Assembly (NCBI GenBank): GCA_977017575.1 | Contig: CDRNVI010000168.1 | Span: forward strand, 64,099-128,098 | From: Paramoeba atlantica | Taxonomy: Eukaryota; Protista; Discosea | Length of the DNA stretch: 64,000 bases | Direction: 5' to 3' | Position numbers and translations under genes: made by a program | In this document: piece by piece, positions 14,455-29,883 of the stretch | Layout: each line of letters starts with the position of its first letter | Position numbering within the stretch: the first letter of the stretch is position 1 | Notes under the pieces: model-generated | What the model saw: only the letters and a program-made list of their open reading frames with translations | What the model was told of the DNA's origin: nothing | Databases searched by the model: none

Positions 14455-15471
14455 ATGCGTGACGAAGTAATTTTAATCTTTTTGGTTTTCATCTGTTTGA
14501 GATTGGGTGTGGAGATTGAAGATGTCTCAACAAGAGACTTCTGTTGGCGACGGCCGAGCGAAGTTTCGATCAAAAGGGATGAGTTCTTCGTCATTCATGT
14601 TGGAAAGACTGGGGGAACTTCTGTTGTTGCTTCTGTATCAAAAGCTTTTCACTTAGGAAAGGATTTTCATCTATGTGAACCAACAATGAATGAGATCGGT
14701 GATCGCCCTGTTTTAATGACAATCCGAGAACCAATTGCACGCGTTCAATCGATTTGGAGATGGAGAAAGTATCAAACGACAGTCTTAGATCATACTGCGT
14801 TTGGTAAAAGTGAGAAAACTCTTTTTCGTTGCTTCCCCTATTTAAATGACTTTTTGGAAGCCAGAGGAAAGTTTGGAAATTTTACCAACACCTCGATATC
14901 GAACTCTATTTGTCGCCAATTCGCAGAACATTCTTTCGCAGCAACTCCTCATTGGCAATGGGATCATCAGCGATATCTTCGCAACTTTACAGACGATTTT
15001 ATCCAGTCCTATCTCTTTCCTCTTCGACAAACGAATCTTTTGGAAGATTTCTTGGCCTTTTGCAAGTACTTCTCTTTAGATAAACGAAAGTGTTTCGAAG
15101 GAATGGAGGGTCTCGTGTTTGAGCACCAGAATGAAGAATACCCCACCAAACCCAATGACTTTTATCTTTCAGACGAAGCGAGGGAGTTCCTGGCCTTCGA
15201 GCTACAAGACGATATCAGCACATATAATTATCTTGTGGACATCTTGCATGCCAAAGTTCGGACCATGAAAAATGCATGGCAACCAATGAATTTCACAAGA
15301 CCTCTTCCAAATGCGACTCCGATATGGCCTGTGAGACCGATGATTAGCGGACCAAAAAGGCCCCCCCCAAAAAAACCTCCTCTCTCTCCCTCTTTTTCTG
15401 TTCATAACGGAATAGCTCCAAGAAAGTTCGTTTCTCCCTTCAAAAGTAAAAAAGTATTGCACCATCAGTAA
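14455..15471 (+). CDS. Sulfotransferase (Sulfotransfer_2-like), N-terminal membrane anchor, Pro-rich tail
   Basis: 5'-PSB IHVGKTGGTS and 3'-PB IREPIARVQSIW motifs. Confidence 0.8.
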   Translation: MRDEVILIFLVFICLRLGVEIEDVSTRDFCWRRPSEVSIKRDEFFVIHVGKTGGTSVVASVSKAFHLGKDFHLCEPTMNEIGDRPVLMTIREPIARVQSIWRWRKYQTTVLDHTAFGKSEKTLFRCFPYLNDFLEARGKFGNFTNTSISNSICRQFAEHSFAATPHWQWDHQRYLRNFTDDFIQSYLFPLRQTNLLEDFLAFCKYFSLDKRKCFEGMEGLVFEHQNEEYPTKPNDFYLSDEAREFLAFELQDDISTYNYLVDILHAKVRTMKNAWQPMNFTRPLPNATPIWPVRPMISGPKRPPPKKPPLSPSFSVHNGIAPRKFVSPFKSKKVLHHQ

Positions 15472-15509: not shown

Positions 15510-17682
15510 TTACAATTTATCTAGAAATCGACTGAGAGGAGGAATCTCCAATGAAAGACCTTTCCTTTTCCTTATCTCTCTCACAACTCCCCCTGCAAGA
15601 GAAAGAGGATCGAGAGGATCCCCTTCAACCATTCTCCATTGATCAAAAAAACAGATTGGTTGGACTTCACCTTGTGTCATTTTCGCAATTTGTTGGTAAA
15701 ATCCAATTGAACATCGAATCGGAAGATGGAGTCTAAGAGTTCTCTCTGGGATTGCTTGGGTGAATTGGGAGGAGGAAAGAATAATAATTTCTCTCTTTTT
15801 GAATTCTTTGGAAATGAGATCGAAATGAGATTCAGAACAAGTTAATTCAACAAGATAAATAGGTTCAACAAGGCGAGGACCAGCAGTTAATTGAGAAGCA
15901 AATAATACCCGCCGTGTAGCAGGGATAATTTGCCCTCCTCCTCGATGAATTGCATCACTCATACCAGCCACATCAACAATATTGTATCGAATACCACGAA
16001 TTGGTTCTTCACAAAGAACTCCCTCAGTCGCGCACCATTGAAATGCAGTAATCATCGAATCCTTTCTTTCATTTAAGTATTGGACACATTTTGTTGTGTC
16101 AATAAGAAAGGAATTGGCAACAGGTCCATTGAAAGCCCAGATTCTTCTCGCTTCTCGTTTTTCCCAATTGTAAGTGTTAACAAGAAGATCGCATGTTTGA
16201 GGTTTAGTTACCTGACCACTACCTTGCACATCTCCCAATTCATTGACTAAATTCTCATCGAGTGGTTCAGCTCGTGCAAAGATTCGATTACGTTTATTCG
16301 CTGACTTAGACATGCACGTTTGCTCAGATAATCGAGAAACAGTTTCGTAATACGAGGGGAAGGGGTCGGTTTTTCGAAGTGGAACTGCTGTCGATCTTTG
16401 TAACTCAGAGATGGCAGTTCTCAATTGAATTTCGTCAGATCCTCCAATGATAAATTCCCCAGCCTCAGTAACTCGACAGGAAATCCCGCTATCACTTTTG
16501 GGTAACTGGGTCATTCCTGAGAGAAGGAGAGGAACTTGTTCTGGATTCACGAGATCAATAGCAATTCGAAGAACAGGAAGATCATTCTTGATTGGCTTTA
16601 CTCGAATAGGAGAAGCTTTCTCTTCTGAAGTTAGAGTTAGAGTGGTCCCAGGTCTCCCCATCCAAGAATGAATTCCGGTAATTGCGATCACATTCCCACA
16701 ACAACACGAGCTGATTCTCTCCTTCACACACCCTGTCGTTACAAGAAGATTTCCCACATTCTTATTTTGTGTTCCTTTGATAAAATTAACCTGTTGGCCC
16801 GAGACGAGAGTCCCAGAAAAAACTCGGCCAAAAACATAAGATTGACTTGAGTAACCATCTTGAATGTTGTGAGAGAGGTAAACGACCAGAGGACCATTTG
16901 GATCACAATTACGAATTCCTTTCGCGACATCATTTGTCTCTTTGCCTCCATACAAAGTCTTAATCCGATTTTGTTGTGCAAGAAGAGGTGATGGAGAGTG
17001 GGAAGCGATCATTGGAAAAAGAGCACCTGAGAGGGGGAGAAATTTTTGGAGAACAACTTGGAGGAGCTTTCGTCCAGTTAAATTCTTTTCCTCTGTTGTC
17101 AATTCAATCCCTAATTTCGCAAATTGTTTCTCATACACATCTTTCTTTTTTAATGTGGCTATATTGTAAAAGAGTTTGCGCAATGGTAAAAAGATAAATT
17201 GACACCACCCCCTATTCAATCTCTTTCCACGCTCATTCAACTCTTTTTTGGTCCATTTTTTTGTTTCAGGATTGTAATAGTTTTCACCCCACAGTTTAGA
17301 AAGAAGCTTCTCTTTTCGGACTCCAAATTTCTTTGAATAAATTTCAGCAAATTTCGAAAGAGTAAACCCAAAACCGTACGACCCTGAACCAAACACAACA
17401 TTCCCCTGAACTGGATCCACAATATCTTCTTTCCTTCCTCTTGTGAGATCTCCTTCCCCAACTTGAGGAGAAAACTTCTCAATCAAACAATTCAAATGGT
17501 CGATTAATAACTTGTAACATTGATAACAATCCTCTGGCTCCATTTCAAACTCTCCAAGCACTCGTTCCATCTTGTTAATCATCAATAATGTTGGGAGAGA
17601 AGAAGGGGTGGACTCAGGAGAGTGGCAGGACGAAAGTGAGGAAGAGGAAGAAGAAGAGGAAGAGGAAGAGGAAGAAGAAGAG

Positions 17683-17713
<31 letters not shown>

Positions 17714-18379
17714 GAGAGGGAGAGGGAGAGGGAGAGGAAGAAGAGGAAGAAGAGGAAGAAGAGGAAGAGGAAGAAGAAGAGGAAGAGGAAGAAGAGGAAG
17801 AGAAGGAGGAGGAAGAAGGAGAGAGAGAAATTTGGAGAAATCTCTCAATCCAAAGTGGAACATCTCTTATCCCATCAAGAAGTAAAAGAGAACTATCAAA
17901 GAGAGGGAGAGATGTTTCTATAGTTTGATGGGGTTGAATGTGAATGAAGTTGAAGAGGTAATTATTGTTGGACCTCTAAACCCAAAAATAAAAAAATGAG
18001 AAAGAACCAAAAAGAAATGAACACAAAAGAAAAGAACCTCAGGAGTTTGAATTGGAAGAGGAGGCGGAGATGGAGATGGAGATGGAGATGGAGATGGAGA
18101 TGGAGATGGAGATGGAGATTGTGAGGCAAAGAGAGAGGGAGAATTGGAAGAGAGGGAAGAGGATTGAACATTCGCATAAAACAAATAATTTCGAGGAACA
18201 AGTGGACTCCCCTCCCAATTCTCTTTTTCTTTTCTTTCCATCTCCTCACCCCCTTCCTTCTCCTCTTCTAATGCCTCACCTTTCGCGATCATTTGCTGCT
18301 GGGAAGACAAAAGGTCAAGAAGGGAATCAGAACCATCTCCAACAATACAAAGATGCCGAATATTCTCTCGATTCTCCAT
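15510..18379 (-). CDS. eEF2-like protein (935 aa) with degenerate GTPase domain; exons 18379-18038 and 17975-15510
   Basis: eEF2 landmarks: NIRHLCIV, LMINKMER, GNVVFGSG..GFGFTL, KSANKRNRIF, DAIHRGGGQII, RLVEPIYLVE, IRKRKGL..FLDKL. The 62-nt phase-0 intron keeps the frame. Confidence 0.9.
17640..17825 (-). repeat. In-frame poly-Ser/(SP)n microsatellite within the eEF2-like gene
   Basis: (GAA/GAG)n and (GAGGGA)n on + strand read as Ser and Ser-Pro in the gene's frame. Confidence 0.9.
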
Positions 18380-19687
18380 CGCTCCTCTGATCTCTGAGAA
18401 AGAAAAAAGATCAGGGGAGGAAATTCAATGAATTTCCAACCCAAAACAGAATAAACCTGCATTTGCAATTGAGGGGGGAAGAAACACATCTTCTTCTGAA
18501 TCCATCGGTTTGTCCAAAAACCAAAACTCTTCTTTCTCTTCTCCAAAGCCAAAAAGGTAAAAGGGACGCCATTCAGGGACACCCTTTCTCTTTTGGTGTG
18601 AGTTGGTTAAATCATGGATCTGATGGACGAGACTTTCGGTCTCAAACCAGAGGAACAAGAAAACTTTAAAGTGGAGGAGAGAGAAACTGGAAATCTCAAA
18701 GTCAGATGGAAGGGTTGGAACAATCTTTATTTCTCTCCCGTTTTCTCCACAGAAAAGGTCTCTCACTTCAAAAAACTTTTGGTTTTCACTCTTTTTCCTC
18801 ACAAGTTTTGGTGTTTATAGAGAGGTGGTGGTGAATTTTTCTCCTTTACACTCAGTGGAAATCCTCGAGTTGTGATTGGTTCGGATTTGTTCTCTCCATG
18901 ACAATGTTCTTCATGTTCATATTTTCTTCCTTTTTAATCACACACAAACAAAAAGGGGCAACTCCAGCTCATCATCTCTTGGATTACGAATGCCTTATGA
19001 GTCATACAACTGTGGCAGTCAGAGCTGAGTCCCTTTTTGGGGCTCGAAGGGATATTCCTTTCTTTAATACAAAAGATAAGACCCGAATCCAGATTTATGT
19101 CGATTTTTTGGCACAGTTTTCCTCTTCTCTTTCTTTTTTGATTCTGAATCCAAAAAAAAAAAACAAGATTTGATGATGATTTGAAATAGGGAAATTCAAT
19201 TTACTGTTGAGGAAGAAAAGATTGCTGCACTTTCTTATCAAAGTTTTTCTCCTTGTTCATTTTTCAAACTTTTGGATTTTCCTCTGAATTTTTTCCCCAA
19301 AAGCACTTAATTGGAATGAAGGATTTAAAGTTGGCATTTGTGGCCACAGAGGTTCAGTTATTGAAGTGGTTCTTTTTCTTTTTGAGTTGATTTGAATTCT
19401 CCCAAATTCATTTTCTTTTTTTTTTTTTCTTCATAGGAACAACAAAGGATCAATCTTAAACCAGCGAAAAGGTGAGAAGAGAAAGATATCAAACTGAAAA
19501 GATGGAAACGAAACTGAGAAAAGAGGAAACTCACACCATCAAGACATGACATAATTTTCCCTTTTTTCCAATTCATTATTTAAAAAGGACATTTTTTGTT
19601 GTTGTTTTTTTTTTCTTCATTTGTGTCTCCTCAATATACAACAAAGATCAAAGATTCGAATTTTTGATCTTTTTGAGATGCCCTTTT

Positions 19688-27759: not shown

Positions 27760-29883
27760 TCATAACTCCCGATGAAAGGATTTTTGAGGTTTCCTTTCAA
27801 AAACAGAATCCATCATCAATTCATCTGATGGAGTTTCGGAAATGTACGCATCAACAGGAGGGATAAAATCCTTCTTTCGGGAGACTAAATTTTTTTTTTT
27901 AATTTCAAAATAAAAATCCAAGAAATTTTGGGACAACTTAAAACAAAAAACAAAAATCAACCTCGAGGTGAAAGATCCATCAAAGTGAAATCAATGTTCA
28001 AGGGACCCCCAAAAACATCGTTTGCGACAGTAAGTTCTGGCTGGTTTTGTTGAAAAAGAGAAAGAACTCAATTCAGTTATTTGGAAGATTTTTTTTTGAA
28101 GTTAAAAAAAAAAGGGTCAGCCAAAGAATGAATAACCTCATCAGCAATTAAAAGAGCAGAAAGGTCAGTAGTTTCCCCTCTCTGAACCCGAAGAGAATTC
28201 ACAACCGAGAAAAAAATCAGACAATATGGCTTTTCTTGTTTCATAACAATCATCTAAAAAACAAAATAAATATTTAACACACTCTATCCATGAGAAGAAA
28301 AAAAAAGAGAAACATAGTCAAATTACCTCTTCGAGATAAGGAGTGATATCATCAAGGATATCATCTGGTGTGAAGGTTTCAAGTGTTGCCCAGTATGTCA
28401 AACAAGGTACCTCATCACTAAAAACAAACACATACTCCTTTGCATCAAGTTCAAGAACCTGACGAGTTGAATATCCGGAAATGTTCGATTTTGCTGCTCC
28501 CATTTGATAGTAAAGGTCGTTTTGATCTTCGACTCCAGCAATTTTTGCTAACTGGTTCCCATACTTCACATCCCATTCTGTTGTTGTGGGCGAACTATTG
28601 ATTTATAGTTGGTGATTAGAACATATCCATGAAATGAGGATCAATTTTTCAAAGAATAAAATAATAATCAAAAAAAAAAGAAGAAATTCATACGAATAAC
28701 CGAGGGTATCTGATAAAATGGCAGACAACATACATTGAGCCGCTTTTGTTGATGGGATTCGTAACGAGTTCTAGAAAAAGGGGGTTAAAAACTTAATTTT
28801 TTTTTTCGGTTCTGGGAAAAAAATGATTAGGTATTCTGAATAACATGAACCACAAACCAAAAACATCTCATAGATAAGAGTTCCAGTGGATCCCCAGGGA
28901 CGAATATCAATGTGAATAACCGATTCATGAGTCACAATTGCACTTTGAATTGCGTGGTGATCAATAATTGCTGGAAGTGTGAAGCTTAAATTCTTGTTTT
29001 GGAGGAACCAAACAAAAATATAAAGAAGAAAAGACAAACCAGCAAGCTTTTCCCGAGGGATATCAAAATATGTGACCGGGGATTGAGACTGTTGATTATG
29101 ATCGACAAGCCCAACACACGAAAAATTTGCGCTGATGATAAAATGTGAATTGGATTAGTAAAAGAAATTGGAACAAGAAAATGACACACGATCTACTGTC
29201 AAAAGAGAGCAGAAAAAAAAGTACTTATCATAGGTCTCTTTAAAAAGAGGAGGGGGATTCGGAAATCCAAAATGATCAATCACAAATTGAGTCTCTCGAT
29301 TCGGCACTTCTGAGATGGAATAAGACCCACTAAAAAAAAAAAGACAGAAAATGATTTGAGATAAAATCAAAAAAAATTAAGTTCCAGTTGAATCAAAAGA
29401 AAAATGAAAAAAGAAATCGATCTCAGATACTTGAAAAGTTCAGCTGCAGAATACGAATTACAATAAGAATCAGTATCCGGACTTAAATGGCCAACCCAAA
29501 GACACCCAGGAGGATATTTGTCAGCAATCGATGCAGGGTGTTTGTGTTCCCACCAATAGAAAGATATACCAATGATAACACAAATCTAAAAAAGTCGAAT
29601 AAAAAAGAGTCCAAAAATCGAAAATTGCTCTTCTTTTTTTTTTCAAGAGAAAAGATCTACAAACCAAAATAGTAAAAAGAGTGATGGAGGTCAAAAGCAA
29701 AGCTGTATTTCTTTTTTCCCAATCATTTTCGGGACATTGTTGAAGGCAAACCTCTTCAACTCCATTTTTCACATCAGTCTCTTCTCGAGCTGCTCCATCT
29801 TCAACCACTCCTCCAGTAACAATTGGTGGAGCCCCACCTGGAACTGGTGATCTCCCAAACCACTCTCGAATCCAGCTGTACAT
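27760..29883 (-). CDS. Family II (DHH/DHHA2) Mn-dependent inorganic pyrophosphatase-like protein with N-terminal TM anchor, about 8 exons
   Basis: Exons give VGHLSPDTDS, NRETQFVIDHFG, VGLVDHNQ, IIDHH, IRPWGSTGTLI, MLSAILSDTL, SPTTT, LDAKEY and VSRKKDFIP, colinear with PpaC-type enzymes. Confidence 0.82.

Follow-up and report, generated by a model that had tools for sequence, protein, structure and literature searches.

A lineage-specific eEF2 duplicate of Paramoeba atlantica with a degenerate G domain and a preserved diphthamide loop, probably retained under selection

The stretch of DNA considered here (the window, 64,000 nucleotides (nt) of Paramoeba atlantica; assembly GCA_977017575.1, contig CDRNVI010000168.1, positions 64,099 to 128,098 of the forward strand) carries on its minus strand, at window positions 18505 to 15510, a degenerate copy of the gene for elongation factor eEF2. 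The gene is probably protein-coding, and it is reasonably likely that it represents a lineage-specific eEF2 duplicate that turned into a pseudo-GTPase, has been retained by selection, and acts through binding instead of catalysis. Its identity as an eEF2-derived pseudo-GTPase under selection is well supported by motif loss, phylogenetic position and substitution rates. Few eukaryotic proteins are as conserved and as tightly constrained as eEF2 and, to our knowledge, a functional nucleotide pocket has been retained in both of its known offshoots, EFL1 and Snu114. A pocketless copy under selection, if confirmed, would mean that the EF2 scaffold is reusable as a pure binding module, especially if such copies arose repeatedly in other lineages, and it would allow ribosome docking, or the function of diphthamide, to be studied apart from GTP hydrolysis in a naturally occurring protein. 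Should the gene prove to be a slowly dying duplicate, the locus would be an ordinary one, mainly illustrating the slow erosion of eEF2 domain IV.

Loss of the nucleotide-binding motifs and preservation of the domain IV tip

The window protein resembles canonical eEF2 (the yeast protein, PDB 1N0U, and the canonical copy of the same genome, P0001 at locus L003) in its five domains, the G'' insert, both loops of the domain IV tip, the context of the diphthamide histidine, and the terminal FLDKL. It differs in that motifs G1-G3 are destroyed, G4 is changed, two low-complexity inserts are present, and domains III and V are strongly diverged. The overall identity to canonical eEF2 is 44%, compared with 73-74% between canonical copies from different amoebozoan groups. 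In addition, the window gene contains two putative introns and shows no codon bias, while the canonical copy is intronless.

Alignment with the canonical copies revealed that GDGSDSLL (18340-18317) stands in place of G1, AHVDHGKST, with a three-residue deletion (aligned as G---DGSDS), and that the P-loop lacks the lysine and the Ser/Thr. The switch I/G2 segment GETRFTDTRQDEQDRCITIKST, including the Thr56-type site and RxITI, gives way to an acidic low-complexity stretch (18280-18209). G3, DSPGH, has become HIQPH (17942-17928) with a four-residue deletion (DSPGHVDF aligned to ----HIQPHQ), and G4, NKMD, reads NKME (17576-17565). Hence none of the features of a functional G domain, namely GxxxxGK[ST], the switch I threonine, DxxG and NKxD, is found. 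The G domain further contains an (SP)n insert (18118-18065, minus strand) and a poly-Ser insert of ~75 residues (~17822-17589, minus strand). Consistently, Pfam GTP_EFTU gave no match in the window protein even at E<=1, whereas the canonical eEF2 of the same genome scored 176 bits. The description of this copy as GTPase-dead in the initial annotation is thereby upheld. As the P-loop, switch I, switch II and NKxD are all altered and a poly-Ser loop lies in the G domain, the protein would almost certainly be unable to bind or hydrolyze GTP or to act as a translocase.

The remaining domains have diverged to different extents. Pfam EFG_IV (64.7 bits, against 104.6 for the canonical copy) and EFG_C, representing domain V (37 against 75), score above the cut-off, D2 (25.7 against 50.7) lies just below it, and EFG_III was not detected in the window protein. 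Identity to the canonical copy is 0.32 in the G core, 0.47 in G'', 0.40 in domain II, 0.34 in III, 0.60 in IV and 0.30 in V. Of the residues invariant in 22 canonical eEF2 sequences, the window protein retains 27% in the G core, 66% in G'', 53% in II, 38% in III, 74% in IV and 42% in V. The earlier statement that domains III-V are well conserved therefore stands for domain IV (identity 0.60) and fails for domains III (0.34) and V (0.30), the latter having its ESFGF motif altered to CSIGF in the alignment (15713-15699, minus strand).

Within domain IV, the diphthamide loop DAIHRGGGQII (15956-15924) is intact and matches that of canonical eEF2 in every residue, its histidine being residue 812 of the 956-residue model, and SKSANKRNR (16310-16284, minus strand), the other loop of the tip, is likewise kept. 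FLDKL is found at the protein end (15527-15513), directly followed by the stop codon (15527-15510 in total). The conserved histidine five residues upstream of the diphthamide histidine is lost (GMSDAIH versus canonical LHADAIH), leaving the extended motif HxDxxHRGGGQ only partly matched. From the alignments, the domain IV tip with the diphthamide loop appears to be the best-kept ancestral part of the window protein. Gene conversion from the canonical copy was considered as a source of this conservation and was excluded: the third codon positions of the tip are saturated despite an amino-acid identity of 0.62-0.72, which rules out a recent event.

An AlphaFold2 model, calculated from a 40-sequence alignment, covers the exon-2 product only, and strand beta1 and the P-loop, encoded by exon 1, lie outside it. 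The model (mean predicted local distance difference test, pLDDT, 81.4; predicted template modeling score, pTM, 0.74) is eEF2-like from G'' to domain V, with the poly-Ser stretch disordered; the remnant of the G core (residues 20-51 of the model) has a pLDDT of 80-88. In a Foldseek search with this model, eEF2 ranked first by E-value. Taken together with the Pfam matches to domains IV and V, the five-domain EF2 architecture is recovered. An apparent likeness to Snu114 in superposition (template modeling score 0.75, versus 0.54 for ribosome-bound eEF2) was rejected. A control model of canonical eEF2 made from the same alignment gave 0.81 versus 0.73, and since the control behaves alike, the better score to Snu114 is uninformative and reflects the predicted conformation only.

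Origin from eEF2, sister copies and selection after loss of the GTPase

A phmmer search of the PDB with the 691-residue C-terminal open reading frame (ORF), matched over its whole length, returned eEF2 at 4e-160, Snu114 at 3e-99 and EFL1 at 4e-38; the trees held no labelled EFL1 sequence, and EFL1 was judged by this score only. In a careful tree, the four degenerate copies of the genome form one clade (96/96) inside the group of the canonical copy and its closest relatives (100/100), with a stem length of 0.37 plus 1.35 substitutions per site, and the family lies far from Snu114-like sequences. The approximately unbiased (AU) test rejected the tree that keeps all other eEF2 sequences together without the dead copies (p=0.0056), and did not reject the placement of the dead copies as sister to the six closest canonical sequences (p=0.079). 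The degenerate clade thus appears to lie inside or beside the genome's own canonical eEF2 group. Tree nesting, stem length and AU results together indicate a lineage-specific duplication, after which a burst of change set in, and the assignment to eEF2 and not to EFL1 or Snu114, made initially from the C-terminus, is sustained by the phmmer scores, the tree position and the AU test.

A canonical eEF2 is indeed present elsewhere in the genome (P0001, locus L003), intronless and intact. Its closest named canonical relatives are those of Acanthamoeba, Balamuthia and Vannella (73-74%), an affinity that points to an amoebozoan. A closer sequence, P0129 (MMETSP1310, filed under the green alga Chloropicon/Chloroparvula), shares 84% identity with the canonical copy and clusters with it, not with plants; it probably stems from a heterotrophic contaminant of the algal culture. 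An exact-match look-up of the 690-residue ORF of the window gene among public assemblies returned no record.

The database proteins closest to the window protein all come from one ENA assembly (ERZ24900291), the gene calls of which are fragmented. One of its loci (L005:1-7921) matches window positions 22011-14145 (7.9 kb) with 0 mismatches and ~50 one-base insertions, mostly lengthening base runs, 17 of them inside the window gene. ERZ24900291 is therefore a noisier assembly of the window's own genome, and its loci L001, L006 and L002 are paralogues of the window gene. Because of the many one-base insertions, frameshifts in this assembly cannot be read as pseudogenization. For the same reasons, an interpretation of L001 (76% nucleotide identity) as the orthologue from a related species, carrying pseudogenizing frameshifts, was abandoned, as the ENA assembly proved to be the same genome and errors of the assembly may account for the frame breaks.

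At least four degenerate eEF2 copies are consequently present in the genome: the window gene, L001, L006 and L002. L001 is full length, shares 72% amino-acid identity with the window protein, and has HRGPGQ in its diphthamide loop. L006 (5045-7035 of its locus) shares 58% identity, has TKME in place of NKME, and ends after domain II. L002 (P0031; 6001-7410 of its locus) has GSVDHGKG, KYPFF and NKID, and also ends after domain II. Domains III-V were not found downstream of L006 and L002, and the two end at nearly the same point; they may represent a short protein form made of dead G, G'' and II, or dead fragments. The window gene, L001 and L006 have in common the three-residue P-loop deletion and the four-residue switch II deletion, and the death of the G motifs thus predates the divergence of these three copies.

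It follows that comparisons among these three copies measure evolution after the loss of the GTPase. The ratios of nonsynonymous to synonymous substitution rates (dN/dS, by NG86, with 95% bootstrap intervals) were 0.36 (0.28-0.43) for the window gene versus L001 at a synonymous divergence (dS) of 0.49, 0.22 (0.14-0.29) for the window gene versus L006 at dS 1.29, and 0.24 (0.18-0.32) for L001 versus L006 at dS 1.11; the low-complexity inserts were left out of the two comparisons involving the window gene. Both saturated dS and errors of assembly at the sister loci would raise these values, not lower them. As every interval lies below 1 among copies that are already dead, selection persisted after GTPase loss. 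The initial suggestion of selection, drawn from the open frame, thus finds support in purifying selection at dN/dS 0.22-0.36, and the window gene shows the pairing of motif loss with purifying selection that characterizes a pseudoGTPase.

The constraint is unevenly distributed. Between the window gene and L001, dN/dS is 0.23 in the G core, 0.25 in G'', 0.28 in II, 0.59 in III, 0.59 in IV and 0.38 in V. Pooled values are 0.25 (0.18-0.34) for G+G''+II and 0.59 (0.41-0.85) for III+IV, a difference with a bootstrap P of ~0.001, and the segment from HIQPH to ERFLQISL reaches 0.06-0.08. Since the last duplication, the N-terminal half has been more constrained than domains III-IV. Polarized changes in domain IV number 25 on L001 and 13 on the window copy (p=0.07); as they fall mostly on L001, the window copy is the family member that best preserves the tip.

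These rates bear on an alternative in which the N-terminal half common to all four copies (dead G, G'' and II) does the work, as a non-enzymatic binder or sponge, and domain IV is a slowly eroding leftover. The partners of such an N-terminal face could be the ribosomal P-stalk tails, eEF2 chaperones, or a kinase. This alternative, which we consider quite unlikely, is supported by the divergence of III and V, by the stronger recent constraint on the N-terminal half, most pronounced in the HIQPH-to-ERFLQISL segment, and by the two copies without III-V, which consist of the N-terminal half only and still show dN/dS of 0.22-0.24. On the other hand, domain IV is the part of the window copy best preserved relative to the ancestor, the polarized changes place most of its erosion on L001, and the truncated copies may simply be dead.

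Gene model, transcription and the possibility of decay

The gene had been described initially as one intact frame of 935 codons at 15510-18379. The DNA does not contain such a frame: translation from ATG 18379 on the minus strand hits a stop at 17918, and the eEF2-homologous frame does not open until 17975, from where it runs to the stop at 15510. Because the first frame closes and the second opens at 17975, an intron of 62 nt (18037-17976) is needed to obtain 935 codons. The motif observations of the initial annotation were thus borne out, while the single frame, like the blanket conservation of domains III-V, was not.

The best gene model comprises three exons on the minus strand (18505-18457, 18393-18038 and 17975-15510) with two putative GT-AG introns of 63 and 62 nt, giving a product of 956 amino acids. 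The start of the gene probably lies upstream of ATG 18379. The in-frame residues upstream of this codon (EIRGAM) are homologous to the N-terminus of canonical eEF2 (QIKEKM), and a pyrimidine tract with CAG, 14 nt upstream of the codon, would serve as the acceptor of the first intron. The putative exon 0 (18457-18505) begins with ATG 18505, encodes MDSEEDVFLPPSIANA, and ends in phase 1 at the donor GCAG|GTTTAT. In support of exon 0, L001 carries the homologous N-terminus MEKEMNLPSIITITEIREAM in a single continuous ORF, and canonical eEF2 has MVRFTVDQIKEKM at the matching position. The putative intron 0 (18394-18456; 63 nt, GTTTAT...CTCAG) has a matching acceptor-like motif in L006 and no counterpart in L001 (window 18394-18456 versus L001:3751-3830). 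Introns thus appear to have been gained or lost between young paralogues, intron 0 being present in the window copy and apparently in L006, not in L001.

Exon 1 (18038-18393), delimited by translation and alignment with canonical eEF2 and the sister copies, encodes strand beta1, the dead P-loop, the acidic replacement of switch I, and the (SP)n repeat. The putative intron 1 (17976-18037; 62 nt, phase 0, GAG|GTTCTT...TTTAG|AGG) joins the two open frames, and it coincides in position and phase with a GT-AG intron of L001 (GAG|GTACTT...CAAG|ATC). Exon 2 (15510-17975), an open frame of 821 codons with the stop, encodes the remainder of the G domain, the G'' subdomain, and domains II-V. GTGAGG donors after IAK (~18281) and further downstream were tried as alternative introns and rejected, as they have no in-phase acceptor and the intervening region is homologous coding sequence in the sister copies. 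The GTT donors of the model fit the genome, since the two introns of a family II pyrophosphatase gene in the window (28540-29100, minus strand) use GTTTGT and GTTATT. Introns of this genome seem often to have a T at position +3 (GTTTGT, GTTATT, GTTTAT, GTTCTT). The intact frame over 956 codons of the spliced model and the intron 1 position common to L001 both speak for a retained protein-coding gene.

Evidence for expression of the window gene is weak. Read coverage was computed with repeats skipped and some records filtered out, and holes in it prove nothing. Run X1 is flat at 2.8x and DNA-like. Run X3, from the same sample, behaves like RNA: its coverage is ~6x over 15665-17630 and 136-141x on the convergent neighboring gene, with nothing in intergenic DNA. 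Run X4, which is filed under a different organism label although its sequence is identical, gave a 24x contig (16854-17630) that begins with a SMART cDNA adaptor at 16854. At this junction, the SMART cDNA primer is joined straight to the gene body with no oligo-dT tract, which suggests mispriming or template switching inside a transcript. Contigs over 17831-18042 are unspliced and at DNA-like depth. Run coverages and the GC content at third codon positions (GC3) taken together indicate low-level transcription at best.

Several observations weigh against a retained, functional binder. Run X3 has no coverage over exons 0 and 1, the 2015 RNA run X6 covers the neighboring gene and not the window gene, no splice joint was seen in the reads for either intron, and GC3 is 0.32, the level of the genome background, versus 0.48 in the canonical copy. 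Constraint is relaxed relative to real eEF2, and III+IV stands at 0.59 (0.41-0.85). Outside the G core, the greatest change is in domains III and V, which contact the GTPase-associated center (30-34% identity; ESFGF to CSIGF). L006 and L002 end after domain II, and the diphthamide loop of L001 reads HRGPGQ, so that the feature common to the family does not need domain IV. Finally, the collections searched yielded no orthologue of the dead family from any other organism.

Part of this evidence would be accommodated if the gene were a young, slowly decaying duplicate without function, the family consisting of eEF2 pseudogenes that have decayed to different degrees and dN/dS mixing past constraint with present neutrality. 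This explanation is unlikely. It draws on the low apparent expression and missing codon bias, the truncation of L006 and L002, the microsatellite-like inserts within the coding region, the lack of orthologues, dN/dS of up to 0.59 in III-IV, and frame breaks of -1, -7, -10 and +1 in L001 in the draft assembly. However, that assembly is error-rich, as its insertions in the 7.9 kb overlap attest. The pairwise dN/dS intervals all exclude 1 although the copies already share dead motifs, and dS among them reaches 1.1-1.3; the dead G core itself is constrained (0.23); and the 956 codons are open, with both introns retaining GT-AG and phase.

Possible roles and degenerate eEF2 copies in other lineages

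For a pseudo-GTPase retained by selection, the preferred mechanism is nucleotide-independent docking at the ribosomal factor site, a proposal that is tentative and falls short of an even chance. The protein would act by binding and not by catalysis, and its preserved domain IV tip, with both tip loops and the diphthamide histidine, would be placed in the decoding center. It may then serve as a low-abundance placeholder or brake, e.g., on idle ribosomes, and not as a bulk factor. Preservation of the tip would lend such a hibernation or factor-site placeholder role indirect support, and the divergence of domain V counts against it, as do, for factor-site docking, the changes in domain III, the recently stronger constraint on the N-terminal half and the two copies devoid of III-V. 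EFL1/Ria1 and Snu114/EFTUD2 are likewise eEF2-derived, perform no tRNA translocation, and act by binding and conformational change, a mode of action that for the window protein is a proposal. They are ancient, pan-eukaryotic proteins that kept a GTP-binding G domain, whereas the window gene is young, lineage-specific and devoid of nucleotide-binding motifs.

The identity of DAIHRGGGQII to the canonical loop, and its position within the best-kept region, the domain IV tip, could also be explained if the protein served as a decoy substrate for exotoxin A-type or cholix-type toxins of prey bacteria, which ADP-ribosylate diphthamide specifically. eEF2, with which a decoy has to compete, ranks among the most abundant proteins of the cell. 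The read depth of the window gene is ~4% of that of the neighboring gene and its codon usage is unadapted; low apparent expression and background codon usage make a stoichiometric toxin decoy unlikely. Moreover, the upstream histidine is lost, the sister copy has a proline in the loop, and two copies lack the domain. This role is accordingly regarded as highly improbable.

PseudoGTPases keep the G-domain fold without nucleotide binding, as exemplified by degenerate septins (PMC10731463). Like the window gene, they have lost P-loop and switch motifs while selection on the remaining fold continues. No paper was found on a pseudoGTPase derived from an EF2-family translational GTPase, and a literature search for dead or divergent eEF2 paralogues gave only EFL1, Snu114 and unrelated work. 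The subfamily listing in a survey of translational GTPases (PMC4342817) names eEF2, Ria1 and Snu114, and that part of the survey holds no degenerate eEF2 class.

Among 146 long eEF2-like proteins collected in the database searches, mostly representatives of 50%-identity clusters, 60 lack GK[ST] and/or DxxG, and many of these keep HRG.GQ. Examples include proteins of Dictyostelium purpureum (XP_003291740.1), Arcella intermedia (A0A6B2KY08), Cladochytrium replicatum (KAI8807393.1), Anaeramoeba (KAJ5071238.1) and Aphanomyces euteiches (P0022/P0024). They have the length of eEF2, their G1 and/or G3 depart from GK[ST]/DxxG and, like the window protein, they often keep HRG.GQ and an end of the ...DKL type. 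They differ in standing apart from the window family in a quick tree, and several retain a GK[ST] P-loop. Because the window family nests in its own eEF2 group and the others stand apart, independent origins are suggested, the exact tree positions of the other degenerate copies being unsure owing to long branches. In the proteins of these five lineages (P0257, P0294, P0256, P0323 and P0022/P0024), the diphthamide loop is kept, and they are annotated only as hypothetical or as eEF2. No paper was found on the degenerate eEF2 copies of D. purpureum, Arcella, Anaeramoeba, Cladochytrium or Aphanomyces.

A broader view, speculative and improbable at present, is that eEF2-derived pseudo-GTPases keeping the diphthamide-bearing tip form a recurrent, unrecognized class of translation regulators. 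Such proteins would have arisen independently in protist and fungal lineages and would dock at the A/factor site without GTP, e.g., parking or braking ribosomes in dormancy, and the window gene would be a member of a small diversifying family within this class.

The neighboring gene used for comparison in the read analysis is an ORF at 14455-15471 on the plus strand, encoding 338 amino acids. It converges on the eEF2 copy, with its 3' end within ~40 nt of the stop codon of the latter. A Pfam search with its product gave no match, and its coverage in run X6 is 22x, beside the 136-141x in run X3.

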